Made by a program: the position numbers and the translations under genes. Below, piece after piece: positions 9,853-60,040 of a stretch of 64,000 nucleotides of DNA. Source of the DNA: Glycera tridactyla (lineage: Eukaryota); NCBI GenBank assembly GCA_965644265.1, contig OZ286466.1, forward strand, positions 24,118,001 to 24,182,000. The letters run 5' to 3'. Under the pieces are notes generated by a model that was given only the letters and a program-made list of their open reading frames with translations, did no database searches and was not told the DNA's origin. Numbering within the stretch: the stretch's first letter is position 1; each line of letters starts with the position of its first letter.

Positions 9853-12800
9853 GAAGCAGCTCCTCATCTCTCGAATGGGTTCATGAATTGTGAAAATGTT
9901 GATTTGCAATATGATGTATGTGAAAATGTGGTGATGGGATTGCATAATATTGATGTATGTAAATGTTTGGAATGTACACATCTTGCTGAGAATGAAGTTC
10001 CAATTATTTGTGAGAATATCAGTGAAACAATTGCAGGCGTGGATTCATCTTCTTTGAAACCAATGAATGATCAAACGGGCAGGCTGTATAATAATACGCA
10101 GATAGGTGGCATGGTTTGCAATGCTATTTCAAGTAGCAATCTCAAAAACATCAATTTGTATGAATATGCGCCGTCTAGCACATATCAAAAACGGGTGCCG
10201 CCACTTCCCGTAACAATCAATAGAAGCATAGCAGATGGGGGTAATTCAATTAGCGCACTCACTTTTGAAGAGAGTGACACAAACAATACGCCAGTGTCGC
10301 CACCACCTTCAAAATCGGCTCACGGCAGCGTCACAGATGCGGGTAATCCACTCAGTGAGCCCACATCAAAAGGTGTCATAAACAATAGCTCAGTGTCGCC
10401 ATCAACATCACTGTCGGCTCATGGCAGCGTGACAGATGCTGGTAATTCAGTTAGCCCACTCACTTCTAAGGGGGGCAACACAAACAACAGCTCAGTGTTG
10501 ACATCAACATCACTCTCTAATCACGGCAGCACAACAGATGCAGATAATTCAACTACCACATTCACTACAATTAAAGGTATAACAAACAAAGAGGTAGTGT
10601 CGGCATCGGCGCCACCGCGTTCTCACGACACCAGATCAAGTGAGCTGCCAATCAGCACCTCTCCTTGCATACGAGATCAAATGACGCCCGTATGTCATAA
10701 AACGGTGTCGGCGTCGGCGTCAATTACACCTCATTGCGATGTCTTGAGTGAGTCAGTGTTGATTGCAACTCACTACGCCGGCCTGAGTAAGCCAGTGACA
10801 GACACTCAGCCTTTGATAGACCGATGTCTATTGACACCAGCATATACTTCAACATCTGCCAGTACTTCAACTCAGACCACGGCATCTTACTCACCCCTTA
10901 CCTATATTAGTCAGCCACAAAATTGGGCAGTATCTCATTCGACCTTTTGGTCACCTAGTGGTAACAAGCTCCAACTAGACGAACCCCACATCTGCTGTGC
11001 TGCTATTAATCATTTCTGGAAGTCTGCTTGTGAGTATACACTATTGGAACCCCCCATTAGTAATCATGATTTCATTGTTTGTTTTGACTATATTTTTGAT
11101 GTATGTATTTTACCTGAACTACCTGCTGTTCCTGTGAATACTCAGTCATGCTGTTTCACTGCATTCAAGCCCATATTGCTGAAGGATTCATGTGAAACAC
11201 ACCAACCACAGGTTGATGCAGTACTACCTATTTTACATTTAAAAGGGAATACAATAGAGGTGGAAGCTTTTAAGGAAGTGTATAATGCATTGGTAGATAC
11301 AGGTGCATCTGTAAATTGTATCTCTGCACATCTATTTTCATCTATTTCGAACAAACATAATATACCACTACAAAGGGACTCTTCTCCTTCTTTCAAAAAC
11401 GCCTCTGGTGAATTAATGAAAAACTTGGGAAAATGTACTATCCCAATTTCTATAGATCACTTCCAGACAGTCTTACATTGCTACGTCATTGAGAACTTGC
11501 CCAAACCAATCTTTTTGGGGCTACCTTTCCTGAAGGACAATCAGGCACAATTAGATTTTTCAAATTCTACCATTGTCTTCCAGAATGGCCTTGTAGCGGC
11601 CCTATTACACCCAGATAACACGAGGCAAACACGTTTTCCATTAAAACCAGTGGATTCTATGAAAATTAGGCCTAAAACAGTGGCCAAGATCCCAGTAAGA
11701 GCTCCTTCAGGATCTTTTGATTCAATTCGGGCATATAAATATGAAGAAAAGTGGTTAATGGAAACCAACTGGGACAATAAACTCAGACAATCAATTATCA
11801 CTTTTGTCAAACCACAGTTCAGACACAAATCAGAAATAGCAGCAGAATTTGATCTTGAGACAATCTCTCAGGATAACACCTCTACAGTCACGGTTATAAA
11901 TAACTCAGACCAACTTATGTATATTGACAATTCTACAATTATAGCATACTGTGAGCCATTCAATACAGAGGATATAATGGAAGTTAATGGCATATCAGAA
12001 AAACGTCGCCAAGAAGTGATACCAGGATACAATACTCATGATCCTAAATTTGATCATATCACTAACTTGGTTTCTAGTGTCACACCAACTCAAAAGTCTA
12101 CTTCATCTTCAATATCTATACAAACTGATATTACGATTTCACCCTCTCTGGAGCATGACTGGGTGTTCACTGAACATGCAGTAGTAGAGGAATCACCACC
12201 AGAGGACATTGTTTATGAAGATTTGGTATGGTCAGATATAGCTGATTTTTCAAATTTGACTTCTGTTCAACAGTCACAATTGATACATGTGTTAGATGAA
12301 AACCGGACATGCTTTGCTGTGAATACTGAGGAAATGCGCACAGTCAATCATGTGCAGCATCAAATTAAATTACTTCCAAATGCCAAACCACATCGCCAAA
12401 GGCCATATAGATTGAATTTAGAGGGACAAAAAGAGATGGATCGTCAAATAGAAAACCTGCTTAGAGATCACGTGATCGAACCAAGCATTGAAAACACATG
12501 GTCTTGCCCAGTGTTTCTAGTCAGGAAAAAGGGCATTTCTCCCAACAGTCCTGTCAAATATAGACTTGTCTGTGATTATAGAAAGCTAAATTCACAAACT
12601 GTGCCTGAATTTCATCCTCTGCCAACATTTGAACAACTGGCAGACAACATTTCAGAAACCAAACCGTCCATATTTTCTGTGATGGATCTTACTCAGGGGT
12701 ACTATCAACTCACAGTACACCCTGCCAGCAGACACCTCACCACCTTCAACACTGGTAGAGGCACCTATCAATGGCGCAAATTGCCCTTCGGGTTAGCTGT

Positions 12801-15582
12801 AGCCCCATTTACGTTTTCTCGGGCAATGGCCATTGCCCTCAATGCTTTGGGAGACAAACCGATTTGGAATTTCCTGGATGATCTGATTGTCGCGTCGAAG
12901 AACTTCAAATCGCACTTAGATGACCTCCAAGCAGTGTTCACACAACTCCATCTCTTCGGGTTCACTCTAAATCCAAAGAAGTGTACTTTTGCCAAAGAAT
13001 CAGTCAGTTTCCTTGGTTTCATTGTCAGTAAAGAAGGTATATCTCCTGACCCCTCCAAAGTTCGAGCTATGACAGAGTTTCCAACTCCAACCAGTGTAGG
13101 TGAACTTAGGAGAGCCTTGGGGCTACTAAACTTTTACCGAAGATTCATTCCTATGTATTCTAAGAGAGCCGCCCCATTATATAAGGCTATGAAGAAGGGG
13201 GCAGCCTTTGAATGGACTTCGAAGATGGAAGAAAGTCTCAAGGATATCAGGAGTGAACTTCTCAAAAATGCAGTCCTAGCACATCCAGATATGAACCAAC
13301 CATTCATTGTCACAACAGATGCCTCCAAGGACTGTATATCACACACAATCTCTCAATTTGACAAAAATGAGACTCTCAGACCAATTTCTTTCTTCTCTCA
13401 GATGCTCAGTCGTGCCCAAGTTAAATGGCACATCAATGAGAAAGAAACATTTAGCTTGGTCATGGCATTCCGCAAAAACCGCCACCTTTTTGGTAGTTCT
13501 CCTATCTATTGTTACACAGACAACCTGACCACAAGGTATGTCCAGCAGCTGAAGAGCTCCTCTAACCCCAAAATTGTAAGGTGGGCTCTTGAATTGCAAA
13601 GATTTCCTTTTGAAATTGTTCACAAGCCAGGAGCCCAACTCAAAGTGGCTGACTGCCTCAGCAGAATCAAGCTCCCAAGCCCCAAAGCAGAAAAGACAAC
13701 CCCAAATTCACAGCAAAGCATTTTCGAGTTCGATGATGATGACAATGGTATTCTTGGTATATTTTATGATATGTTTGATGAAGAACCACGGGTGTCTGAG
13801 AAAATAGCTCAGGATCCTTGGATTGAAGACCTTCTACAGACACTACAGAAAGTTACTGTAGAGGGAAGATATGTCAGAAATTTGCATGTGGTAGGAGCTG
13901 TGTCTGAGCAGACACAAAAGGAAGGACATACTGAGTTCAGCACTCACACTCCTCCAGCTTTAACTTCCTCCACATTAGCTATTGATCAGTCTACTCAACC
14001 AAACATGTCTTCATCACACATTAGTACACAGCCAACTGAAGAAGAGTTCACTTTTGAAAATGAGGAATACCTCTTTGATGCTTGTTTAGAACATCGTTTT
14101 GAACTCAAGGATGAGCAATTAGCTGACCCACACCTTGGTCCAATTATGAGATATCTCCTGGATCAAACTCTTCCAAAATCCTCTAGAAAAGCCAAAGCTC
14201 TTTTGGCAGACATTGACCATTGGATGTTGGACGAAGATGGCATTTTGAGAAGAATTTTCAAACCCAACCGTTCTCGAAATCCCAGAGATACTATCTTCCA
14301 ATTAGCTCTTCCGCCAAGGTTCAGACATGATATCATTAAGCAATATCATGATAGTCTGGTCGGAGGCCACCAAGGTGCACCCAAGCTGGTTGCTCTCCTG
14401 AGAGAAAGATATTACTGGTCAAAAATGTATGCTGATGTTTACCAATATGTACAATCCTGTGAGTCTTGTCAAATGTCAAAACGATCCATGAACTATCAAA
14501 AAGCACCATTACAGTCAAGAGATATCCCACCATTCATGGGACGTGTTCACATGGATTGCCTTCACCTGCCAAAATCAGTTGAGGGCTTCACTGTCTTACT
14601 GGTGATTGTGGATGCTTTTTCAAAAGCAATTGAGCTTATTCCGTGCATAAACGAAACAGCTCCCACCTTGGCTCGCCAATTCTTCAGGCATTGGATTTGC
14701 AGATACAGTATCCCTCTGCAGATTACAACAGACAAGCACCCCAGTTTTATGGGTCAATTTCTCACTGAACTAACAAGATACTTGGGTATGGAAAAACTTG
14801 CCATATCAACGGCTAATCCCAAAGCCAACGGGCAGGTGGAAAGAATGAATTCCCAAATTCTCAATTCACTCCATGCTGCCACCAGAAACACAGGTCGCTC
14901 ATGGCCTGATCTCTTACCTGCCATCAGATTTTCTTATATGACGGCACCATCTCATAGTTCTCAATTCTCTCCATTTGAAATTCTTCATGGGGTCCCACCA
15001 AGGTATCCCCAGTCTTACATGTGGAATAACCCAAATTCAATTCCACCTACAACCCAGAAAACAATGGAACATTTGCTTCCAGAGTTAGCAATTTTCAGAA
15101 CAGCAGCAAAAGAAAACCTAGAAAAGGCCACCAGGGAGCATAAACGTATTTATGATCAAAAGATCATCTCAGACATGGACGAATTCCATGTGGGAGACCT
15201 GGTTTTGATTAAAGACTTCAGGCAACCAGGGACCAGTACTGACAAGTTTTCCTTGAAGTACTGGGGTCCATTTAGAGTAATTAGAAAATTTGGCCCAGTA
15301 TTGTACCAATTGATGAACACACATACATATGACATCTTGACATCACTGAGACATTTTGACCAGCTCCGCAGATACAATCCGCCAGACACAGCGAGGTTAC
15401 GCCAAATACCACCCGAGCCACTGCAGGACTTAGACCTCATTACACCACTACCCACTACACATCAACCAGTACCACCACCACACCCACCAACAACCAACAC
15501 ACCTCCACACCCCCGCCAACCAACACACCACACCACTCAACACCACCAACCTTCACACTCAACAATACCACTCCTAGAGTGA
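9853..15582 (+). CDS. pol: Pol polyprotein (PR-RT-RNase H-IN), in frame with gag after one UAG
   Basis: Protease LVDTGA (about 11296), RT DLTQGYYQ / FLDD (12871), RNase H TDAS..EKE..YTDN..ADCLSR, integrase HHCC, D-D-E and GPF motif; no stop between 9853 and the ATG at 9883. Confidence 0.96.
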   Translation, partial: EAAPHLSNGFMNCENVDLQYDVCENVVMGLHNIDVCKCLECTHLAENEVPIICENISETIAGVDSSSLKPMNDQTGRLYNNTQIGGMVCNAISSSNLKNINLYEYAPSSTYQKRVPPLPVTINRSIADGGNSISALTFEESDTNNTPVSPPPSKSAHGSVTDAGNPLSEPTSKGVINNSSVSPSTSLSAHGSVTDAGNSVSPLTSKGGNTNNSSVLTSTSLSNHGSTTDADNSTTTFTTIKGITNKEVVSASAPPRSHDTRSSELPISTSPCIRDQMTPVCHKTVSASASITPHCDVLSESVLIATHYAGLSKPVTDTQPLIDRCLLTPAYTSTSASTSTQTTASYSPLTYISQPQNWAVSHSTFWSPSGNKLQLDEPHICCAAINHFWKSACEYTLLEPPISNHDFIVCFDYIFDVCILPELPAVPVNTQSCCFTAFKPILLKDSCETHQPQVDAVLPILHLKGNTIEVEAFKEVYNALVDTGASVNCISAHLFSSISNKHNIPLQRDSSPSFKNASGELMKNLGKCTIPISIDHFQTVLHCYVIENLPKPIFLGLPFLKDNQAQLDFSNSTIVFQNGLVAALLHPDNTRQTRFPLKPVDSMKIRPKTVAKIPVRAPSGSFDSIRAYKYEEKWLMETNWDNKLRQSIITFVKPQFRHKSEIAAEFDLETISQDNTSTVTVINNSDQLMYIDNSTIIAYCEPFNTEDIMEVNGISEKRRQEVIPGYNTHDPKFDHITNLVSSVTPTQKSTSSSISIQTDITISPSLEHDWVFTEHAVVEESPPEDIVYEDLVWSDIADFSNLTSVQQSQLIHVLDENRTCFAVNTEEMRTVNHVQHQIKLLPNAKPHRQRPYRLNLEGQKEMDRQIENLLRDHVIEPSIENTWSCPVFLVRKKGISPNSPVKYRLVCDYRKLNSQTVPEFHPLPTFEQLADNISETKPSIFSVMDLTQGYYQLTVHPASRHLTTFNTGRGTYQWRKLPFGLAVAPFTFSRAMAIALNALGDKPIWNFLDDLIVASKNFKSHLDDLQAVFTQLHLFGFTLNPKKCTFAKESVSFLGFIVSKEGISPDPSKVRAMTEFPTPTSVGELRRALGLLNFYRRFIPMYSKRAAPLYKAMKKGAAFEWTSKMEESLKDIRSELLKNAVLAHPDMNQPFIVTTDASKDCISHTISQFDKNETLRPISFFSQMLSRAQVKWHINEKETFSLVMAFRKNRHLFGSSPIYCYTDNLTTRYVQQLKSSSNPKIVRWALELQRFPFEIVHKPGAQLKVADCLSRIKLPSPKAEKTTPNSQQSIFEFDDDDNGILGIFYDMFDEEPRVSEKIAQDPWIEDLLQTLQKVTVEGRYVRNLHVVGAVSEQTQKEGHTEFSTHTPPALTSSTLAIDQSTQPNMSSSHISTQPTEEEFTFENEEYLFDACLEHRFELKDEQLADPHLGPIMRYLLDQTLPKSSRKAKALLADIDHWMLDEDGILRRIFKPNRSRNPRDTIFQLALPPRFRHDIIKQYHDSLVGGHQGAPKLVALLRERYYWSKMYADVYQYVQSCESCQMSKRSMNYQKAPLQSRDIPPFMGRVHMDCLHLPKSVEGFTVLLVIVDAFSKAIELIPCINETAPTLARQFFRHWICRYSIPLQITTDKHPSFMGQFLTELTRYLGMEKLAISTANPKANGQVERMNSQILNSLHAATRNTGRSWPDLLPAIRFSYMTAPSHSSQFSPFEILHGVPPRYPQSYMWNNPNSIPPTTQKTMEHLLPELAIFRTAAKENLEKATREHKRIYDQKIISDMDEFHVGDLVLIKDFRQPGTSTDKFSLKYWGPFRVIRKFGPVLYQLMNTHTYDILTSLRHFDQLRRYNPPDTARLRQIPPEPLQDLDLITPLPTTHQPVPPPHPPTTNTPPHPRQPTHHTTQHHQPSHSTIPLLE

Positions 15583-33207: not shown

Positions 33208-33435
33208 ATGGAAGACGTCCTAAAGAAAGAGCTGAATACAAGTGTGCTGACTAAGGTCGGAACTGGCGGAGGAGGACAGATCTGTACTGGCCAAGGCTAC
33301 ACAATAGATGGTGACCAGAAGATATTCGTCAAGTATAACTCGAGGAACGATGCGAAGAGGATGTTTGAGGGCGAAGCAGCAAGCCTGGAAGCTATCCTTG
33401 CTACTGACACTGTTACAGCTCCAACACCAATCAAG
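33208..33435 (+). CDS. FN3K: Fructosamine/ketosamine-3-kinase exon 1
   Basis: ACCATGG start; MEDVLKKEL...IFVKYN...MFEGEAASLEAIL..TVTAPTPIK aligns by eye to the FN3K/FN3KRP N-terminus; donor AAG|GT, phase 0. Confidence 0.9.
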
Positions 33436-34893: not shown

Positions 34894-34997
34894 GTTGTTG
34901 ATAATCCGAATGGTGGTGCTGCTCTAGTGACAGATTACTTGGAGATGAGCTCGAGTCTACAAATACATGCGGCACAATTGGGAGAGCAACTTGCAAG
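34894..34997 (+). CDS. FN3K: FN3K exon 2
   Basis: tag|VVDNPNGGAALVTDYLEM...AAQLGEQLA R|gtgag; phase 0 to 2. Confidence 0.92.
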
Positions 34998-40177: not shown

Positions 40178-40346
40178 GATGCACTTGCATAACTCCGAGG
40201 TATGTGCTCAAGATGAGAAGCGGCAGAGTTTCATACACAATGGAGGCAATGAGAAGGAATTGAAGGGCATCACCGAATTTGGATTTCATCTCACTACATA
40301 TTGTGGATTCTTCCCCCAGGACAATTCATGGACAGATGACTGGGTG
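40178..40346 (+). CDS. FN3K: FN3K exon 3
   Basis: cag|(R)MHLHN...FGFHLTTYCGFFPQDNSWTDDWV|gtaaat; matches [22 protein letters not shown]; phase 2 to 0. Confidence 0.93.
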
Positions 40347-41766: not shown

Positions 41767-41817
41767 ACATTTTTCACCAGGAAGCTTGGACACAGTCTTG
41801 ACCTGGTAGAAACAGAG
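41767..41817 (+). CDS. FN3K: FN3K exon 4 (51 nt)
   Basis: ttgcattgcag|TFFTRKLGHSLDLVETE|gtgagt; fills the gap between exons 3 and 5 (cf. TFFARHRLQAQLDLIEKD); phase 0 to 0. Confidence 0.9.
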
Positions 41818-44800
41818 GTGAGTATAAATAGATGTAATTTGTAGTTTAGTCTTGACCTGGTAGTAAAAAAGGTGATTATATATAGATGTAATTTGTAGTT
41901 TAGTCTTGAACTGGTAGAAAAAGAGGTGATTATATATAGGTGTAATTTGTAGTTTAGTCTTGACCTGGTAGAAAAAGAGGTGAGTATGTATAGATGTAAT
42001 TTGTAGTTTCATGACCTGGTAGAATAAGAGGTGAGTTTATATAGATGTTATTTGTAGTGTAGTCTTGACCTGGTAGAAAAAGAGGTGAGTATATATAGAT
42101 GTTATTTGTAGTTTAGTCTTGACCTGGAAGAAAAAGAGGTGAGTATACATAGGTGTAATTTGTAGTTTAGTCTTGACCAGATAGAAAAAGAGGTGAGTAT
42201 ATATAGATGTAATTTGTAGTCCCGTGTTGACCTGGTAGAATAAGAGGTGAGTATATATAGATGTAATTTGTAGTTTAGTCCTGACCTGTTAGAAAAAAAG
42301 GTGAGTATATATAGATGTAATTTGTAGTTTCATGACCTGGTAGAAAAAGAGGTGAGTATATATAGATGTAATTTGTAGTTTAGTCTTGACCTGGAAGAAA
42401 AAAAGGTGGGTATATATAGATGTAATTTGTAGTCCCGTGTTGACCTGGTAGAATAAGAGGTGAGTATATATAGATGTAATTTGTAGTTTAGTCTTGACCT
42501 GGAAGAAAAAGAGGTGAGTTTATATAGATGTAATTTGTAGTCCCGTGTTGACCTGGTAGAATAAGAGGTGAGTATATATAGATGTAATTTGTAGTTTAGT
42601 CCTGACCTGTTAGAAAAAAAGGTGAGTATATATAGATGTAATTTGTAGTTTCATGACCTGGTAGAAAAAGAAGTGAGTATATATAGATGTAATTTGTAGT
42701 TTAGTCTTGACCTGGAAGAAAAAAAGGTGGGTATATATAGATGTAATTTGTAGTCCCGTGTTGACCTGGTAGAATAAGAGGTGAGTATATATAGGTGTAA
42801 TTTGTAGTTCAGTCTTGACCTGGTAGAAAAAGAGGTGAGTATATATAGATGTAATTTGTAGTTTCATGACCTGGTAGAATAAGAGGTGAGTTTATATAGA
42901 TGTTATTCGTAGTGTAGTCTTGACCTGGTAGAAAAAGAGGTGAGTATATATAGATGTTATTTGTAGTTTAGTCTTGACCTGGTAGAAAAAGAGGTGAGTA
43001 TATATAGGTGTAATTTGTAGTTTAGTCTTGCCCTGGTAGAAAAAGGAAGTGAGTATATTTTTAAATGTAATTTGAAGTTTAGTCTGGACCTGGTAGAATA
43101 AGAGGTGAGTATATATAGATGTTATTTGTAGTTTAGTCTTGCCCTGGTAGAAAAAGGAACTGAGTACATTTTTACATGTAATTTGAAGTTTAGTCTGGAC
43201 CTGGTAGAAAAAGAGGTGAGTGTATATAGATGTGATTTGTAGTTATGTCTGGACCTAGTAGAAAAAGAGGTGTATATATATATGGATGTGATTTGTAGTT
43301 TAGTCTGGACCTAGTAGAAAAAGAGGTGTATATATATAGATGTAATTTGTAGTTTAGTCTTGACCTGGTAGAAAAAGAGGTGAGTATATATAGGTGTGAT
43401 TTGTAGTTTAGTCTTGACCTGGAAGAAAAAGAGGTGAGTATATATAGGTGTAATTTGTAGTTTAGCCTTGACCTGGTAGAAAAAGAGGTGAGTATATAAA
43501 GATGTTATTTCCAGTTTAGTCTTGACCTGGAAGAAAAAGAGGTGAGTATATATAGGTGTAATTTGTAGTTCAGTCTTGACCTGGTAGAAAAAGAGGTGAG
43601 TATATATAGGTGTAATTTGTAGTTTAGTCATGACCTGGTAGAAAAAGAGGTGAGTATATATAGGTGTAATTTGTAGTTTAGTCTTGACCTGGTAGAAAAA
43701 GAGGTGAGTATATATAGATGTAATTTGTAGTCCCGTGTTGACCTGGTAGAAAAAGAGGTGAGTATATATAGATGTAATTTGTAGTTTCATGACCTGGTAG
43801 AAAAAGAGGTGTGATTATATAGATGCAATTTGTAGTTTCATGACCTGGTAGAATAAGAGGTGAGTATATATAGGTGTAATTTGTAGTTTAGTCATGACCT
43901 GGTAGAAAAAGAGGTGAGTATATATAGATGTAATTTGTAGTTTCATGACCTGGTAGAAAAAGAGGTGTGATTATATAGATGCAATTTGTAGTTTCATGAC
44001 CTGGTAGAATAAGAGGTGAGTATATATAGGTGTAATTTGTAGTTTAGTCTCGACCTGGAAGAAAAAGAGGTGAGTATATATAGGTGTAATTTGTAGTTTA
44101 GTCTTGACCTGGTAGAAAAAGAGGTGAGTATATATAGATGTAATTTGTAGTTTAGTCTTGACCTGGTAGAAAAAGAGGTGAGTATATATAGATGTAATTT
44201 GTAGTTTCATGACCTGGTAGAAAAAGAGGTGAGTATATATAGATGTAATTTGTAGTTTAGTCTTGACCTGGTAGAAAAAGAGGTGAGTATATATAGATGT
44301 TATTTGTAGTGTAGTCTTGACCAGGTAGAAAAAGAGGTGAGTATATATAGATGTTATTTGTAGTTTAGTCTTGACCTGGTAGAAAAAGAGGTGAGTATAT
44401 ATAGGTGCAATTTGTAGTTCAGTCTTGACCAGGTAGAAAAAGAGGTGAGTATATATAGATGTAATTTGTAGTCCCGTGTTGACCTGGTAGAATAAGAGGT
44501 GAGTATATATAGATGTAATTTGTAGTTTAGTCCTGACCTGTTAGAAAAAAAGGTGAGTATATATAGATGTAATTTGTAGTTTCATGACCTGGTAGAAAAA
44601 GAGGTGAGTATATATAGATGTAATTTGTAGTCCCGTGTTGACCTGGTAGAATAAGAGGTGAGTATATATAGATGTAATTTGTAGTTTAGTCCTGACCTGT
44701 TAGAAAAAAAGGTGAGTATATATAGATGTAATTTGTAGTTTCATGACCTGGTAGAAAAAGAGGTGAGTATATATAGATGTAATTTGTAGTTTAGTCTTGA

Positions 44801-47800
44801 CCTGGAAGAAAAAAAGGTGGGTATATATAGATGTAATTTGTAGTCCTGTGTTGACCTGGTAGAATAAGAGGTGAGTATATATAGATGTAATTTGTAGTTT
44901 AGTCTTGACCTGGAAGAAAAAGAGGTGAGTTTATATAGATGTAATTTGTAGTCCCGTGTTGACCTGGTAGAATAAGAGGTGAGTATATATAGATGTAATT
45001 TGTAGTTTAGTCCTGACCTGTTAGAAAAAAAGGTGAGTATATATAGATGTAATTTGTAGTTTCATGACCTGGTAGAAAAAGAAGTGAGTATATATAGATG
45101 TAATTTGTAGTTTAGTCTTGACCTGGAAGAAAAAAAGGTGGGTATATATAGATGTAATTTGTAGTCCCGTGTTGACCTGGTAGAATAAGAGGTGAGTATA
45201 TATAGGTGTAATTTGTAGTTCAGTCTTGACCTGGTAGAAAAAGAGGTGAGTATATATAGATGTAATTTGTAGTTTCATGACCTGGTAGAATAAGAGGTGA
45301 GTTTATATAGATGTTATTCGTAGTGTAGTCTTGACCTGGTAGAAAAAGAGGTGAGTATATATAGATGTTATTTGTAGTTTAGTCTTGACCTGGTAGAAAA
45401 AGAGGTGAGTATATATAGGTGTAATTTGTAGTTTAGTCTTGCCCTGGTAGAAAAAGGAAGTGAGTATATTTTTAAATGTAATTTGAAGTTTAGTCTGGAC
45501 CTGGTAGAATAAGAGGTGAGTATATATAGATGTTATTTGTAGTTTAGTCTTGCCCTGGTAGAAAAAGGAACTGAGTACATTTTTACATGTAATTTGAAGT
45601 TTAGTCTGGACCTGGTAGAAAAAGAGGTGAGTGTATATAGATGTGATTTGTAGTTATGTCTGGACCTAGTAGAAAAAGAGGTGTATATATATATGGATGT
45701 GATTTGTAGTTTAGTCTGGACCTAGTAGAAAAAGAGGTGTATATATATAGATGTAATTTGTAGTTTAGTCTTGACCTGGTAGAAAAAGAGGTGATTATAT
45801 ATAGGTGTGATTTGTAGTTTAGTCTTGACCTGGAAGAAAAAGAGGTGAGTATATATAGGTGTAATTTGTAGTTTAGCCTTGACCTGGTAGAAAAAGAGGT
45901 GAGTATATAAAGATGTTATTTCCAGTTTAGTCTTGACCTGGAAGAAAAAGAGGTGAGTATATATAGGTGTAATTTGTAGTTCAGTCTTGACCTGGTAGAA
46001 AAAGAGGTGAGTATATATAGGTGTAATTTGTAGTTTAGTCATGACCTGGTAGAAAAAGAGGTGAGTATATATAGATGTAATTTGTAGTTTCATGACCTGG
46101 TAGAAAAAGAGGTGTGATTATATAGATGCAATTTGTAGTTTCATGACCTGGTAGAATAAGAGGTGAGTATATATAGGTGTAATTTGTAGTTTAGTCTCGA
46201 CCTGGAAGAAAAAGAGGTGAGTATATATAGGTGTAATTTGTAGTTTAGTCTTGACCTGGTAGAAAAAGAGGTGAGTATATATAGATGTAATTTGTAGTCC
46301 CGTGTTGACCTGGTAGAAAAAGAGGTGAGTATATATAGATGTAATTTGTAGTTTCATGACCTGGTAGAAAAAGAGGTGTGATTATATAGATGCAATTTGT
46401 AGTTTCATGACCTGGTAGAATAAGAGGTGAGTATATATAGGTGTAATTTGTAGTTTAGTCATGACCTGGTAGAAAAAGAGGTGAGTATATATAGATGTAA
46501 TTTGTAGTTTCATGACCTGGTAGAAAAAGAGGTGTGATTATATAGATGCAATTTGTAGTTTCATGACCTGGTAGAATAAGAGGTGAGTATATATAGGTGT
46601 AATTTGTAGTTTAGTCTCGACCTGGAAGAAAAAGAGGTGAGTATATATAGGTGTAATTTGTAGTTTAGTCTTGACCTGGTAGAAAAAGAGGTGAGTATAT
46701 ATAGATGTAATTTGTAGTTTAGTCTTGACCTGGTAGAAAAAGAGGTGAGTATATATAGATGTAATTTGTAGTTTCATGACCTGGTAGAAAAAGAGGTGAG
46801 TATATATAAATGTAATTTGTAGTTTAGTCTTGACCTGGTAGAAAAAGAGGTGAGTATATATAGATGTTATTTGTAGTGTAGTCTTGACCAGGTAGAAAAA
46901 GAGGTGAGTATATATAGATGTTATTTGTAGTTTAGTCTTGACCTGGTAGAAAAAGAGGTGAGTATATATAGGTGTTATTTGTAGTTCAGTCTTGACCAGG
47001 TAGAAAAAGAGGTGAGTATATATAGATGTAATTTGTAGTCCCGTGTTGACCTGGTAGAATAAGAGGTGAGTATATATAGATGTAATTTGTAGTTTAGTCC
47101 TGACCTGTTAGAAAAAAAGGTGAGTATATATAGATGTAATTTGTAGTTTCATGACCTGGTAGAAAAAGAGGTGAGTATATATAGATGTAATTTGTAGTTT
47201 AGTCTTGACCTGGAAGAAAAAAAGGTGGGTATATATAGATGTAATTTGTAGTCCCGTGTTGACCTGGTAGAATAAGAGGTGAGTATATATAGATGTAATT
47301 TGTAGTTTAGTCTTGACCTGGAAGAAAAAGAGGTGAGTTTATATAGATGTAATTTGTAGTCCCGTGTTGACCTGGTAGAATAAGAGGTGAGTATATATAG
47401 ATGTAATTTGTAGTTTAGTCTTGACCTGGTAGAAAAAGAGGTGAGTATATATAGATGTAATTTGTAGTTTCATGACCTGGTAGAATAAGAGGTGAGTTTA
47501 TATAGATGTTATTCGTAGTGTAGTCTTGACCTGGTAGAAAAAGAGGTGAGTATATATAGATGTTATTTGTAGTTTAGTCTTGACCTGGTAGAAAAAGAGG
47601 TGAGTATATATAGGTGTAATTTGTAGTTTAGTCTTGCCCTGGTAGAAAAAGGAAGTGAGTATATTTTTACATGTAATTTGAAGTTTAGTCTGGACCTGGT
47701 AGAATAAGAGGTGAGTATATATAGATGTTATTTGTAGTTTAGTCTTGACCTGGTAGAAAAGGAAGTGAGTATATTTTTATATGTAATTTGTAGTTTAGTC

Positions 47801-47960
47801 TGGACCTGGTAGAAAAAGAGGTGAGTATATATAGATGTTATTTGTAGTTTAGTCTTGCCCTGGTAGAAAAAGAAGTGAGTATATTTCATATATAATTTGT
47901 AGTTCAGTCTGGACCTGGTAGAAAAAGAGGTGAGTATAGATAAATGTAATCTGTAGTTTT
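41794..47960 (+). repeat. 54/51-bp minisatellite (about 115 units) derived from the exon 4/intron 4 junction
   Basis: Unit TTTAGTCTTGACCTGGTAGAAAAAGAG|GTGAGTATATATAGATGTAATTTGTAG; 18/17-aa periodicity in the minus-strand ORFs. Confidence 0.97.
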
Positions 47961-48089
47961 CAAATGAGAGGATTGCAGAGGTGTTTGAATCATTCCAGAA
48001 TCCCACAAAAATCATGTATGGATCTCAAAATGAAGCAATCTTGATTGATTGTCCTGAGTTTCGATGCATACAAATTTGGCAGTTGTATG

Positions 48090-48215
48090 CCGGAAAAAAT
48101 GCATTCATGTTCCTGCATGCATACATGTAAAAGAACCACTGCTGTCCTTCTCAAAGAGTATGGGATTGCCCGGGTAACCATACCTTCTTTCTTCTGCATT
48201 TTCAGTCCAATATAA
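48090..48215 (+). mobile_element. Diverged family B fragment
   Basis: GTAAAAGAACCACTGCTG..AAAGAGTATGGGATTGCCC..TTTTCAGTCCAATATAAC. Confidence 0.7.
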
Positions 48216-48520
48216 CATGTGGGGCTGAGAGCATTTTAAACTAGAATAGTCCAGTGGCCCAGAAAGTTTTGAATTATTTTTCCATGCCCATTGCATGTGG
48301 ATCTGAATAATACCATAATGGTGCTCATGTGATGTTGAACAGCCATCCGACCAAACAAACAGGGAGAAATGCTGCACTGATTTTGAGAGGCAGAAAACAT
48401 CTTGGAGTGAAATTATTTTAGTATTATCTCCTGTCAGGACCTCACATAACATGTAAAATGGCTGCTGGGTTCTTTGAATGGAGGGATAAAGATGAAATGT
48501 TTATTCATCTTTTTCCATAG

Positions 48521-48662
48521 TACGGGGATCGGGAAGTAATACATCTGTGGTCACAGCTACAGCACGTCATCCCGATGATGTTCAGTGGTGTAGACATCAA
48601 ACCTGCCTTGGTTCATGCTGATCTATGGAGTGGAAATGTGGCAGAAAACAGTTGGGGGCCAC
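48521..48662 (+). CDS. FN3K: FN3K exon 5 (catalytic loop)
   Basis: ccatag|[13 protein letters not shown]...[17 protein letters not shown]|gtaagt; phase 0 to 1. Confidence 0.95.
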
Positions 48663-48739
48663 GTAAGTAGGTCATCGAATACCAATCTGCATTATATATG
48701 CACGAGAGTGATGATATTGGTGCACTAACATCTCTCACA

Positions 48740-48817
48740 CACACCCACTACACACACACACCCACATGCAATGTGAGGTACATATGCAAGCCATTTGGGC
48801 ATTTGTTAGATATGGAT

Positions 48818-48872
<55 letters not shown>

Positions 48873-48980
48873 CAATGTGAGGTACATATGCAAGCCATTT
48901 GGGCATTTGTTAGATATAAATGCATGCACATGCACACACACGCACACACACACACGCACGCATGCACACACACACACATA
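48740..48980. repeat. (CA)n microsatellites within a short tandem duplication
   Basis: CATGCAATGTGAGGTACATATGCAAGCCATTTGGGCATTTGTTAGATA occurs twice, separated by (CA)n. Confidence 0.9.
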
Positions 48981-49031: not shown

Positions 49032-49206
49032 TGATTTTTGATCCAACATCATTCTATGGACACAGCGAGTTTGAATTTGGCAATATTGAGCTGTTTGGCG
49101 GGTTTGGGCCGGACTTTCTTGATGCATATCGCAAGGTGTTGCCAGAGGTGCAAGGCTACAAACAGCGTGTCCAACTCTATATGCTTTATAATGCTGTAAA
49201 CCACTG
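49032..49206 (+). CDS. FN3K: FN3K exon 6
   Basis: ccag|LIFDPTSFYGHSEFE...FGGF...LYMLYNAVNHW|gtaag; phase 1 to 2. Confidence 0.95.
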
Positions 49207-50057: not shown

Positions 50058-50121
50058 GAATCATTTTGGATTGAAATACCGTGACCAAACCTTGAAGCTG
50101 ATGAGGCAGCTAGTGGAATAG
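50058..50121 (+). CDS. FN3K: FN3K exon 7 (last coding exon)
   Basis: atttcag|(W)NHFGLKYRDQTLKLMRQLVE*; total CDS 933 nt = 310 aa. Confidence 0.93.
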
Positions 50122-52353: not shown

Positions 52354-54085
52354 TAGTACTTTCTCTGTTTTGACATGTGGCAGTTGGTGCATGCGAGAGA
52401 TTATGATCATCTCAAATATCGCTGGATGATGGAAGCAAGTGACAATAATCCTTCTATTGAATCCCTTTGTTAGAATTACGTTTCTCAGTGCTTCTGTTCT
52501 CAACGACTTCTCAATAGAAAACTCGTTACCACTGGTGATGCGAGATTTCAGTTTCTTCGCCTGCTGTCATGCTGAACCGACATTACTGTAGCTTACCGAG
52601 TCACACAATGTATCATATGATTTCTCAATAGATACTGGTATATCTAACTTGTTTTTGTACTGGTTTGTTTGTTATACGTACTTTCTGTACTTGTTTGTTT
52701 GTTATGAATTTGATAGCCCAGCTACACATTTGTTAAATTTTAACCTCTCCAGGAGACCAGTCTAGTGTCAAGGGAATGAGAATGGAATCTTGCTTTCAAA
52801 AATATTCTTTTTTATTTGCATGCCTCATAATGACCATCAATGTGTTATAAAAATATCATATAGTGAAACCTCAAACAAGAGACTACATGTACCTCTTTCA
52901 AGAGGCCACTTTTTGGTGACAGTCAGGGCTCAAATTTCAGAATTTTAGAGCTCAGAAAATAATCATGGTCCTCAGATTTCAGATACTCAAGAAAGCAATG
53001 ATTGAATGACTGGAAATTCAGGAGCATGAGTCAGAAATTTATTTTAGGCAGATTGATTGATGATGTTGACCTTCATCAGCCAGAGTAAAAAGTACAGCAT
53101 TCAGCTATTTGGCTGAAGCATGTGCCAAATAGTGTTCAGAAAATATCAGCCTTGAAACATTCTCGATTTCAATTTTCTATCAAATTTTCATAATTCTAAC
53201 ATATGTCTGAAATTGGCATCACTGTTGATGACACTGGCAGTATGACTACTGTGTCCATGTAATACTTTAGGGTGACATCTGTGGGCAGGTGGTCTTCCTA
53301 TAGAAGAGGTACATATATGTCAAACAAGTTGGACTAACAAGTTGGACTCTGATACGCCCACAGTCGCGCGATGCGAGATCGGCCGGTAGCTGACAGCTCG
53401 AGGTGACGCGCGAGTAGAGTAGAGAGAGAGAAGAAGTTGCGCAACTCGGCCCGGAGCTCCGGGAGCGCGGCGCGATCCACGCTCGTTTCAATCGGCATTT
53501 AGTCACCATTTCGCACAAATGATACTCACATTTGATCTAATTATGCTTTAAAGTGTATTCCCTTGCAATTGGTGTTAGTTTCGTGTGTTGACAATGTCAT
53601 TTTGAGTAAGAAATCGAGCCAAGAAGTGGAAAGAATCTAGTGTCTAGATTCGTAGATACGCATCATCACTGCTGGTCAAGGTATTGTGGAGGGGCTACCT
53701 CTGATGGACCATGTGAGTGAGCCTGACAGTAGGACCGGGCTTAAGGGGAGTGCTCCTTGCATTTGAGGAGCAGGGAGAAATCATTAATCCAATTAAATTC
53801 AATTCAATATTCATTATTACAGGCTTATCAAATAGAAATAACAACAGCACTACATTTGTAATTAAGATACTACAATAACATAGACACACATACAAATACA
53901 TGAAATAGAATGGGTGCACTGGCAAATACAGTGTTAACATCATTTCAGGGAAATTCAAAATAACTATTTCAGCCATAGTATATACAGTAGTAGCTGCCAT
54001 GCTCAGGTGATGGTAACCTGACCATTTGTGCCTAGGAAGGAGAGAGCCTGCAATTCGAGTACAGGTTTTCCCAAGATTGTGGGGG

Positions 54086-55400
54086 ATGAATATCACTTTC
54101 TGGAGGAATGTGGGAGTGTGAGGCCTCCAAGCAGATACATGCTGTGGGGATAAATATCACCTTCTGATAGTATGTGGGAATTTGAGGCATCCAGGCAGCT
54201 ACATCCTGTGGGGATGAATATTACTTTCTGATAGTATGTGGGAATTTGAAGCCTTGAGGCAGCTGGATGTTGTAGGGAGGAATATCACTTTCTGATAGTA
54301 TGTGGGAGTTTGAGGCCTTCAGGCAGCTAGATGCTGTGGGGATGAATATCACTTTCTGATAGTATGTGGGAGTTTGAGGCCTTCAGGCAGCTAGATGCTG
54401 TGGGGATGAATATCACTTTCTGATAGTATGTGGGAATTTGAAGTCTCAAGGCAGCGGGATGCTGTGGGGATGAATATCACTTTCTGATAGTATGTGGGAG
54501 TTTGAGGCCTTCAGGCAGCTAGATGCTGTGGGGATGAATATCACTTTCTGATAGTATATGGTAGTTTGAGGCCTTCAGGCAGCTACATCCTGTGGGGATG
54601 AATATCACTTTCTGATAGTATGTGGGAATTTGAAGCCTCAAGGCAGCGGGATGCTGTGGGGATGAATATCACTTTCTGATAGTATGTGGGAGTTTGAGGC
54701 CTTCAGGCAGCTAGATGCTGTGGGGATGAATATCACTTTCTGATAGTATGTGGTAGTTTGAGGCCTTCAGGCAGCTAGATGCTGTGGGGATGAATATCAC
54801 TTTCTGATAGTATGTGGGAATTTGAAGCCTCAAGGCAGCGGGATGCTGTGGGGATGAATATCACTTTCTGATAGTATGTGGGAGTTTGAGGCCTTCAGGC
54901 AGCTAGATGCTGTGGGGATGAATATCACTTTCTGATAGTATATGGTAGTTTGAGGCCTTCAGGCAGCTACATCCTGTGGGGATGAATATCACTTTATGAT
55001 ACTATGTGGGAATTTGAAGCCTCAAGGCAGCGGGATGCTGTGGGGATGAATATCACTTTCTGATAGTATGTGGGAGTTTGAGGCCTTCAGGCAGCTAGAT
55101 GCTGTGGGGATGAATATCACTTTCTGATAGTATGTGGGAATTTGAAGCCTCAAGGCAGCGGGATGTTGTGGGGATGAATATCACTTTCTGATAGTATGTG
55201 GGAGTTTGAAGCCTCAAGGCAGCGGGATGCTGTGGGGATGAATATCACTTTCTGATAGTATGTGGGAAAATGAGGCCTTCAGGCAGCTAGATGCTGTGGA
55301 GATGAATATCACTTTCTGATAGTATGTGGGAATTTGAAGCCTCAAGGCAGCTAAATGCTGTGGAGATGAATATCACTTTCTGATAGTATGTGCGAGTTCT
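54086..55400 (+). repeat. 64-bp minisatellite, left arm (about 20 units)
   Basis: TGTGGGGATGAATATCACTTTCTGATAGTATGTGGGAGTTTGAGGCCTTCAGGCAGCTAGATGC; period 64 (54301 to 54365). Confidence 0.95.
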
Positions 55401-56040
55401 GAGACCCCAAGTCAGTAGATGGTTGAATACTAGCTGCCAAGATAGCCCCTGGCCACAACATTTGTGTATCTTGTCAGGCTAGTTAAGTACCAGCGTGATG
55501 CTGTGGGGGATGGAGATCATTTTCTGAAGGAGTGTGGGAGTTTTGAGACCCTCAGGCAGCAGATATCAGTTCAGCCCTAGCATACATGCCCCAATTTTAT
55601 TCACCTCACTATGCAGGACAAGTGTATTTATATTTTGTGTGCAGAAGGTCAGCTTGCAAGATCAGCTACTATTTCCATGTCTGAAGCACTTCAGGTGAAA
55701 CATGTGGGCAGGCGATGGAAACGGGCTGCTATCCGTGAGGAGAGGAGCATGTTTTCAGCTGAATGCATATATCCATAGCTACAAAAGGCAACTCTGATCA
55801 AAGATAAACTAGGCTACAACTTCACAGGCTTAATCATCATATCGTATTTGATCATGTGTATATATGTTCCGTCTAACTGAAGAAGAATACATTGTTGTAT
55901 CTAACTGTTTAGCACAAATAAATATGAATCGGTTCCATTATAGAACAAAATTTTATTCTAAAGCTGATTCGACTGCAGTGATGCCCATAAATCAATTAGG
56001 ATTTATAGTGACAGGGATATAATCATGTATTTTAGGCATC

Positions 56041-58689: not shown

Positions 58690-60040
58690 CTCAGAACTCC
58701 CACATACTATCAGAAAGTGATATTCCTCCCCACAGCATCTAGCTGCCTTAAGGCTTCAAATTCCCACATGCTATCAGAAAGTGATATTCATCCCCACAGC
58801 ATCTAGCTGCCTGAAGGCCTCATTTTCCCACATACTATCAGAAAGTGATATTCATCCCCACAGCATCCCGCTGCCTTGAGGCTTCAAACTCCCACATACT
58901 ATCAGAAAGTGATATTCATCCCCATAGCATCTAGCTGCCTGAAGGCCTCAAACTCCCACATACTATCAGGAAGTGATATTCATCCCCACAGCATCCCGCT
59001 GCCTTGAGGCTTCAAATTCCCACATACTATCAGAAAGTGATATTCATCCCCATAGCATCTAGCTGCCTGAAGACCTCAAACTCCCACATACTATCAGGAA
59101 GTGATATTCATCCCCACAGCATCCCGCTGCCTTGAGGCTTCAAATTCCCACATACTATCAGAAAGTGATATTCATCCCCATAGCATCTAGCTGCCTGAAG
59201 ACCTCAAACTCCCACATACTATCAGGAAGTGATATTCATCCCCACAGCATCCCGCTGCTATGAGGCTTCAAATTCCAACATACTATCAGAAAGTGTTATT
59301 CCTCTCCACAGCATCTAGCTGCCTTAAGGCTTCAAATTCCCACATACTATCAGAAAGTGATATTCATCCCCACAGCATCCCGCTGCCTTTAGGCTTCAAA
59401 CTCCCACATACTATCAGAAAGTGATATTCATCCCCATAGCATCTAGCTGCCTGAAGGCCTCAAACTTCCACATACTATCAGAAAGTGATATTCATCCCCA
59501 CAGCATCTAGCTGCCTTGAGGCTTCAAATTCCCACATACTATCAGAAAGTGATATTCATCCCCATAGCATCTAGCTGCCTGAAGGCCTCAAACTCTCACA
59601 TACTATCAGGAAGTGATATTCATCCCCACAGCATCCCGCTGCTATGAGGCTTCAAATTCCAACATACTATCAGAAAGTGTTATTCCTCTCCACAGCATCT
59701 AGCTGCCTTAAGGCTTCAAATTCCCACATACTATCAGAAAGTGATATTCATCCCCACAGCATCCTGCTGCCTTGAGGCTTCAAATTCCCACATACTATCA
59801 GAAAGTGATATTCATCCCCACAGCATCTAGCTGCCTGAAGGCCTCAATTTCCCACATACTATCAGAAAGTGATATTCATCCCCACAGCAAGTAGCTGCCT
59901 GAAGGCCTCAAACTCCCACATACTATCAGAGAGTGATATTCATCCCCACAGCATCCCGGTGGTACTCAACCAATATTTACTGTCTTAGGTTCTCAAAACT
60001 TCCACATTCTGTCTGAAAGTGATATTCATCCCCACAGCAG
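58690..60040 (-). repeat. 64-bp minisatellite, right arm (about 21 units, inverted)
   Basis: Reverse complement of the 54086-55400 unit. Confidence 0.95.

Follow-up and report, generated by a model that had tools for sequence, protein, structure and literature searches.

A 115-unit minisatellite spanning the exon 4 donor of an FN3K-type gene in Glycera tridactyla

Described junction minisatellites and the FN3K array

Minisatellites whose first monomer spans an exon–intron boundary have already been described in human genes (F7, IFI6, CBS, LMNB2, PDGF and ABCA7), in which splicing takes the first donor, the next one or two contributing little if anything. The array reported here is of this known design: it occupies most of intron 4 of an FN3K-type gene located within 64,000 nucleotides (nt) of Glycera tridactyla DNA (assembly GCA_965644265.1, contig OZ286466.1, positions 24,118,001 to 24,182,000 of the forward strand; this whole stretch is referred to below as the window, and all coordinates are positions within it). 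Among the described systems is the minisatellite of intron 7 of human F7, which comprises 5–9 units of 37 bp (Borensztajn et al. 2006, PMC1557585). Experiments with 50 minigenes showed that its pseudo-sites can function; splicing nevertheless took only the available donor lying farthest upstream, and this held even when the downstream copies had been improved to 91% complementarity to U1 (PMC1557585). The FN3K array resembles that of F7 in that the boundary lies within the first monomer and sequence-identical copies follow the authentic donor. It differs in its size (115 units of 54 bp) and in its near-consensus donor (GAG/GTGAGT), the F7 donor (TGG/GTGGGT) being of moderate strength; in addition, the unit found here also ends in AG, and the host is an invertebrate FN3K gene.

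Several further human cases are summarized in the same report (PMC1557585). The border of intron 2 of IFI6 (6-16) is reiterated approximately 26 times, with 25 pseudo-sites, the nearest two of which are used alongside the authentic donor, while two pseudo-sites are used in the variable number tandem repeat (VNTR) of CBS intron 13 (31 bp, 15–20 units), where a substitution in the second repeat was reported to prevent multiple alternate splicing. For LMNB2 (100 bp, 10–15 units) and PDGF (81 bp, 16–18 units) the authentic donor is named as the only one used. CBS and IFI6 share with FN3K a reiterated exon/intron border, and the CBS substitution resembles the weakened donors of units 2 and 3 described below; however, their copy numbers are far lower, and in FN3K a premature stop is present in every pseudo-donor product. 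LMNB2 and PDGF are similar in that the junction is reiterated and most of the intron is covered by the repeat, but they have longer units in only 10–18 copies.

The VNTR of ABCA7 intron 18 (25-bp unit, 12 to approximately 427 units, 298 bp–10.7 kb) begins at the donor of exon 18; the donor of its second unit is used at a low level and expression declines with repeat length (De Roeck et al. 2018, PMC5954066). It is likewise a large array placed at the donor GT of an exon, and its size range takes in that of the FN3K array. In contrast, the ABCA7 unit is GC-rich, starts at the GT and includes no exon sequence, and its effects were measured in people. Decoy exons, which resemble exons but lie within introns and favor the retention of their intron (Parra et al. 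2018, PMC6097662; 2020, PMC7373989), provide the nearest described mechanism to a decoy role: they too are exon-like intronic units, and the splicing machinery engages their splice sites without productive outcome. Decoy exons, however, occur singly, are conserved and have 3′ and 5′ sites that are both functional, whereas the FN3K units are 24–27 nt long, have poor 3′ sites and show no signal of conservation.

Neither the design of the FN3K array nor its likely behavior is new. A sequence-only reading of the locus had treated this design as unprecedented, a view that cannot be upheld, since the class was already on record (PMC1557585, PMC5954066). The array belongs to this class of junction-spanning minisatellites by virtue of a tandem unit of minisatellite size (approx. 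10–100 bp), a boundary contained in the first monomer and downstream copies of the donor. The locus is nevertheless a striking natural test case, a large example of a known oddity in which approximately 100 consensus-strength donors face a single acceptor and the gene still appears to be functional. It represents an invertebrate counterpart of the disease-linked ABCA7 VNTR and a demanding natural test of the most-upstream-donor rule, which was set up on the 5–9 copies of human F7. Should the first donor be used cleanly, the rule would hold against over 100 competing donors across 6 kb; should expression be lost in a length-dependent manner, the locus would provide a tractable model of gene modulation by junction VNTRs. 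The results presented below suggest that the array is probably a tolerated, mostly neutral minisatellite, the first donor being used and the copies being removed with the intron.

The host gene, the array and its donor copies

FN3K is a protein-repair kinase gene. The host gene is of this type, and seven exons with GT-AG borders were read from the sequence of the + strand:

33208..33435, + strand: FN3K exon 1; ATG at 33208; donor AAG/GTAGTA; PF03881 match, E 1e-07; lies within the open spliced coding sequence
34894..34997, + strand: FN3K exon 2; donor AAG/GTGAGC; alignment colinear with vertebrate FN3K
40178..40346, + strand: FN3K exon 3; donor GTG/GTAAAT; PF03881 match, E 0.0011
41767..41817, + strand: FN3K exon 4; 51 nt, phase 0-0, TFFTRKLGHSLDLVETE; its last 24 nt open repeat unit 1
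48521..48662, + strand: FN3K exon 5; YGDREV...HADLWSGN...; donor CAC/GTAAGT; PF03881 match, E 2.9e-05
49032..49206, + strand: FN3K exon 6; PF03881 match, E 7.9e-18
50058..50121, + strand: FN3K exon 7; stop codon TAG at 50119-50121

The Pfam fructosamine-kinase model (PF03881) matched exons 1, 3, 5 and 6 in translation, most strongly exon 6 (E 7.9e-18), and the HxDLWSGN motif was found in exon 5. When joined via the first donor (41817 to 48521), the seven exons form 933 nt, or 310 codons, without an internal stop, and the spliced 310-aa product is, over its residues 1-310, 51% identical to a bat protein of 309 aa named fructosamine-3-kinase. The profile match and the full-length collinearity together assign the host gene to the fructosamine-3-kinase family (PF03881). 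Exon 4 aligns to TFFTRHRLQAQLDLIEKD of bat FN3K, and the exon 4/5 junction is free of indels in the alignment (seven homologues). The exon 4 (41767-41817) and the start of exon 5 (48521) that had been proposed from the sequence alone were thus confirmed by both the sequence and the FN3K protein alignment. As judged from the exon model, the conserved protein is the product of the first donor (41817). The gene looks functional, the array notwithstanding, because it retains an open 310-aa frame, a conserved collinear protein and GT-AG borders at all seven exons.

A profile of bat FN3K and the seven exon peptides matched nothing but vertebrate proteins in the protein database. The product of the gene itself, taken as a positive control, would score approximately 312 bits, near the top of the profile list; its absence from this list therefore indicates that no full-length product is present in that database. 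A protein search with the exon 5 peptide alone yielded no candidates, the exon 1 open reading frame had no exact match, and metagenome scans with the spliced exon 4-type/exon 5 junction and with the repeat core were both blank. A search of representative sequences with exon 6 revealed nothing nearer than about 50–60% identity.

The repeat array and its main components are as follows:

41791..47956, + strand: minisatellite of 115 units, consensus TTTAGTCTTGACCTGGTAGAAAAAGAG/GTGAGTATATATAGATGTAATTTGTAG, with 48 distinct unit sequences
42229..43624, + strand: array block of 1396 bp (approx. 26 units), which recurs at 44640-46035, 2411 bp downstream, with 2 mismatches
43633..44587, + strand: array block of 955 bp, which recurs at 46200-47154, 2567 bp downstream, with 4 mismatches
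47957..48520, + strand: non-repetitive 3′ remainder of intron 4, with the true acceptor at its end (80% pyrimidine tract, TTTTTCCATAG/)

Tandem Repeats Finder delimited the array at 41794-47959 (period 54, 115.0 copies, 88% matches, 2% indels, score 9257); a further entry, of period 213, corresponds to a four-unit higher-order structure. Segmentation anchored on the GTAATTTGTAG motif gave 115 units between 41791 and 47956 (83 of 54 bp, 22 of 51 bp, 5 of 57 bp, 3 of 56 bp and 1 of 55 bp), so that both methods reproduced the earlier estimate of about 115 tandem copies. Unit 1 (41791-41844) contains the true exon 4 boundary (41817/41818). The homology begins at 41794, i.e. 24 nt before the end of exon 4, and extends 30 nt into intron 4, exactly the composition of the unit that had been proposed. 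The array makes up 92% of this intron (6139/6703 nt). A 32-mer taken across the donor had 106 matches with up to 3 mismatches, all of them within the array, and none elsewhere in the window, the chance expectation being 0. The possibility that the unit is a fragment of a dispersed repeat or transposon was rejected, no copy being present in the window beyond the array.

Because the 1396-bp and 955-bp blocks recur in near-identical form, much of the array appears to be very recent, or is possibly the result of an assembly duplication. The former block has the appearance of a recent internal duplication, and duplications of this kind suggest an ongoing turnover of copies. The units at the two edges (1-3 and 110-115) are the most divergent of the array, which is the expectation for arrays homogenized by unequal exchange. 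The codon at 41812-41814 is ACA (Thr) in the true exon and AAA (Lys) in 114 of the 115 repeat units, and the aligned vertebrate FN3K proteins (P0039, P0054, P0112) carry Lys at this position; this hints, if weakly, that the array may preserve an older state of exon 4.

The strength of the donors was expressed as the energy of pairing with the 5′ end of U1. Two regions deserve separate listing:

41815..41823, + strand: authentic exon 4 donor GAG/GTGAGT, -12.7 kcal/mol, the strongest in the gene (the other five range from -5.3 to -9.6 kcal/mol)
41845..41952, + strand: units 2 and 3, adjoining the true exon, with donors GTGATT (G to T at +5) of -6.7 and -6.8 kcal/mol

The 9-mer of the authentic donor, GAGGTGAGT, is present in 83 of the 115 units and GTGAGT in 96, in line with the claim that almost every unit carries the consensus GAG/GTGAGT; pairing of -12 kcal/mol or better was calculated for 82 units. 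The first full-strength pseudo-donor is that of unit 4 (41979/41980), with the next strong candidates at 42030 and 42084. Donors as weak as those of units 2 and 3 occur in only 21 of the 114 pseudo-units, and the chance of finding both of these units weak is approximately 0.03 if they are independent, or 0.18 if a single mutation was inherited (our own arithmetic). We regard this feature as suggestive but not as proof.

Each of the 115 units ends in AG and 108 of them in TAG, as the sequence-only reading had it. The exon-like blocks enclosed between AG and GT are, again as described there, 27 nt (FSLDLVEKE) or 24 nt long (FHDLVEKE, 22 units). Stop-free blocks of the AG...GTGAGT type are in frame in 68 of the 114 pseudo-units; 24 units, now counted, contain the in-frame TAA that had been noted, and 7 are out of frame. 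When exon 4 is read through the first donor, VSINRCNL is followed by TAG (41842-41844) after 8 codons, and every product of a downstream donor would therefore contain a premature stop. This stop had been predicted correctly, although not the peptide preceding it, since VSIYRCNL is the consensus of the array and not the sequence adjoining exon 4. The acceptors had been described as having short pyrimidine tracts, and we found a mean pyrimidine content of 52% at the pseudo-acceptors, compared with 60–80% at the five real acceptors of the gene (70% at exon 4). Approximately 4.7 AG dinucleotides are located within 40 nt upstream of each pseudo-acceptor.

Analysis of variability across the aligned units revealed no signal of selection on the donor copies, which are neither conserved nor targeted for decay. 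The donor 9-mer shows average variability: its minor alleles sum to 49, which places it 21st among the 54 circular windows of 9 columns, or 22nd when each distinct unit type is counted once. Masking of the donors by RNA structure was rejected, the fold z-scores against shuffled sequences being -0.67 for three consensus units and -0.73 for the true exon with three units. No Rfam family was found in or near the array, and neither AATAAA nor ATTAAA occurs within it. With respect to the functional 3′ and 5′ sites that characterize decoy exons, the 5′ sites of the array are strong and the 3′ sites poor, given their low pyrimidine content and the AGs upstream. A recursive splice site (AG/GT) was rejected for the + strand, on which the AG at the end of a unit and the next GT are separated by 24–27 nt.

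Choice among the donors

From the anatomy of the array, the identity of its donors, the open reading frame and the lack of any signal of selection or structure, all of which are observed directly, we infer which donor is chosen in vivo, that the array is neutral and how it expanded. The array would have originated from a tandem duplication of 54 bp (24 nt from the end of exon 4 together with the adjoining 30 nt of intron 4), which would then have been amplified to approximately 115 copies by unequal exchange or replication slippage, with recent duplications of blocks of 1.4 and 0.95 kb as part of this growth. The spliceosome would take the most upstream donor (41817/41818), because this is the only one that has a real acceptor 51 nt upstream and so completes a properly defined exon. 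The other 114 units would behave as pseudo-exons of 24–27 nt placed behind poor acceptors, to be excised with the 6.7-kb intron, and any leak to a downstream donor would meet the TAG at 41842-41844 and lead to nonsense-mediated decay (NMD).

Most likely, the array has no function of its own. That it may be inert had been offered by the sequence-only reading as a fallback, and this turns out to be the explanation that fits best, because of the tiny pseudo-exons, the poor pseudo-acceptors, the average variability of the donors and the F7 precedent. The array is old enough for approximately 12% divergence to exist between units, and the reading frame is nonetheless intact. Moreover, minisatellites are frequent in the window (about 10 arrays identified by Tandem Repeats Finder), and therefore a chance overlap of one of them with a splice junction requires no special mechanism.

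Several points weigh against a neutral array. The pseudo-donors match the strength of the authentic donor, itself the strongest in the gene, and are preceded by the same purine-rich block. The weak donors of units 2 and 3 might reflect past selection against competitors close to the authentic donor, in which case the array would not be fully neutral. Work on competition in cis by Eperon and colleagues reportedly indicates that when all donors are occupied by U1, the one nearest to the acceptor can win. By analogy with IFI6, CBS and ABCA7, where the proximal one or two pseudo-donors are used to some extent, those of FN3K might also be used, and the inverse correlation of repeat length with expression in ABCA7 might apply here as well.

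In view of the ABCA7 precedent (PMC5954066), a length-dependent effect on expression is a live rival, which we consider a real possibility, though clearly the less probable one. According to this explanation, U1 bound at approximately 96 strong pseudo-donors would compete with the authentic donor or stall, and leakage followed by NMD, or retention of intron 4, would lower FN3K output as the array grows, as a side effect and not as an evolved function. The authentic donor and 82 downstream copies (83 of 115) do share one 9-mer that is stronger than the other donors of the gene, and TAG is reached by 27 nt into the intron in every downstream-donor product. In ABCA7 both low-level use of the second-unit donor and an inverse relation of expression to length were recorded (PMC5954066), proximal pseudo-sites are used in CBS and IFI6 (PMC1557585), and decoy exons were reported to favor the retention of large introns (PMC6097662, PMC7373989). 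However, identical or improved downstream donors were no competitors at all in F7 (PMC1557585), and in ABCA7 the authors observed no influence of repeat length on NMD (PMC5954066). In the FN3K gene itself, the pseudo-donors bear no signal of selection, the reading frame is intact, and the two weak proximal units could stem from the single inherited mutation considered above.

By comparison, there is only an outside chance that the array is one of many, in the sense that minisatellites composed of an exon end plus a splice site recur in this genome, either arising from mutation linked to splice sites or transcription, as the strong excess of G over C on the transcribed strand of the array might hint, or being kept as copy-number dampers acting as U1 decoys. 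The functional readings put forward on the basis of the sequence, i.e. a decoy/NMD rheostat, poison micro-exons and a U1 platform, are without support in the sequence.

It is very unlikely that the array is an artefact of assembly, its length having been inflated or collapsed or, less likely still, the whole array being spurious. Assemblers can duplicate or drop structures such as the 1396-bp and 955-bp blocks, which recur inside the array at 99.6–99.9% identity. On the other hand, the 48 distinct unit sequences form an ordered higher-order pattern and both edges are more divergent, as in real minisatellites resolved by long reads, and the array passes without a seam into exon 4 at its 5′ end and into unique intron sequence at its 3′ end.

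We give slightly less credence still to the idea that the array was selected as a U1-loading platform, whose dense binding of U1 would benefit the gene by, for example, blocking premature polyadenylation or aiding elongation. The 96 copies of GTGAGT in 6.1 kb and the lack of a canonical poly(A) signal in the array would suit such a role, but the donor positions are no more conserved than the remainder of the unit, and very recent block duplications, typical of neutral turnover, dominate the content of the array. Furthermore, intron 4 without the array is only approximately 560 nt long, and with no canonical poly(A) signal in the array itself there is little that would need protection.

Least credible of all is the splicing of the 24–27-nt AG...GT blocks between exons 4 and 5 as cassette or poison micro-exons, with inserts of 8–9 residues of the FSLDLVEKE type (68 units) or a TAA stop (24 units) as the outcome: the 68 clean in-frame blocks among the 114 pseudo-units, the 24 with TAA and a yUnAy-like TTGAC read from the sequence 43 nt upstream of each unit-end AG are outweighed by the poor pyrimidine tracts, by several AGs lying between this candidate branch point and the unit-end AG, by the fact that an insert would duplicate a conserved stretch at a junction without indels in seven aligned homologues, and by the failure of any insert-bearing protein to turn up, albeit in a weak search. 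Blocks of 24–27 nt are also below the usual size for exon definition unless dedicated enhancers are present, and spacers of 27 nt are too short for introns.

Other features of the array and the window

The transcribed strand of the array (41818-47956) is strongly skewed in base composition, with 26% G and 6.8% C, and its GC content is 33%, compared with 41% in the window. On the antisense strand of the same region there are stop-free stretches of up to 189 codons, composed of 18-residue repeats such as LQITSIYTHLFFYQVKTK, together with 98 occurrences of a pyrimidine-tract CAG/GT motif which resembles a recursive splice site and is confined to this untranscribed strand. Since no minus-strand gene is known to cover the array, the antisense open frames and the CAG/GT motifs are probably a mechanical by-product of the 54-bp unit.

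Intron 5 of the FN3K gene (369 nt) harbors a 104-bp duplication (48736-48979), which is flanked by a CA microsatellite.

Elsewhere in the window, two arrays of a 64-bp unit, with approximately 20 copies each, are located at 54082-55403 and 58698-59955 in inverted orientation. A minisatellite at 7146-7985 (33 bp, 25.6 copies) reads as an open repeat frame (SINQ...CKPY). The open frame of 1909 codons at 9853-15579 (+ strand) represents the pol of a Gypsy-type long terminal repeat retrotransposon, with protease, reverse transcriptase, RNase H, integrase and Tf2-type SH3 domains.

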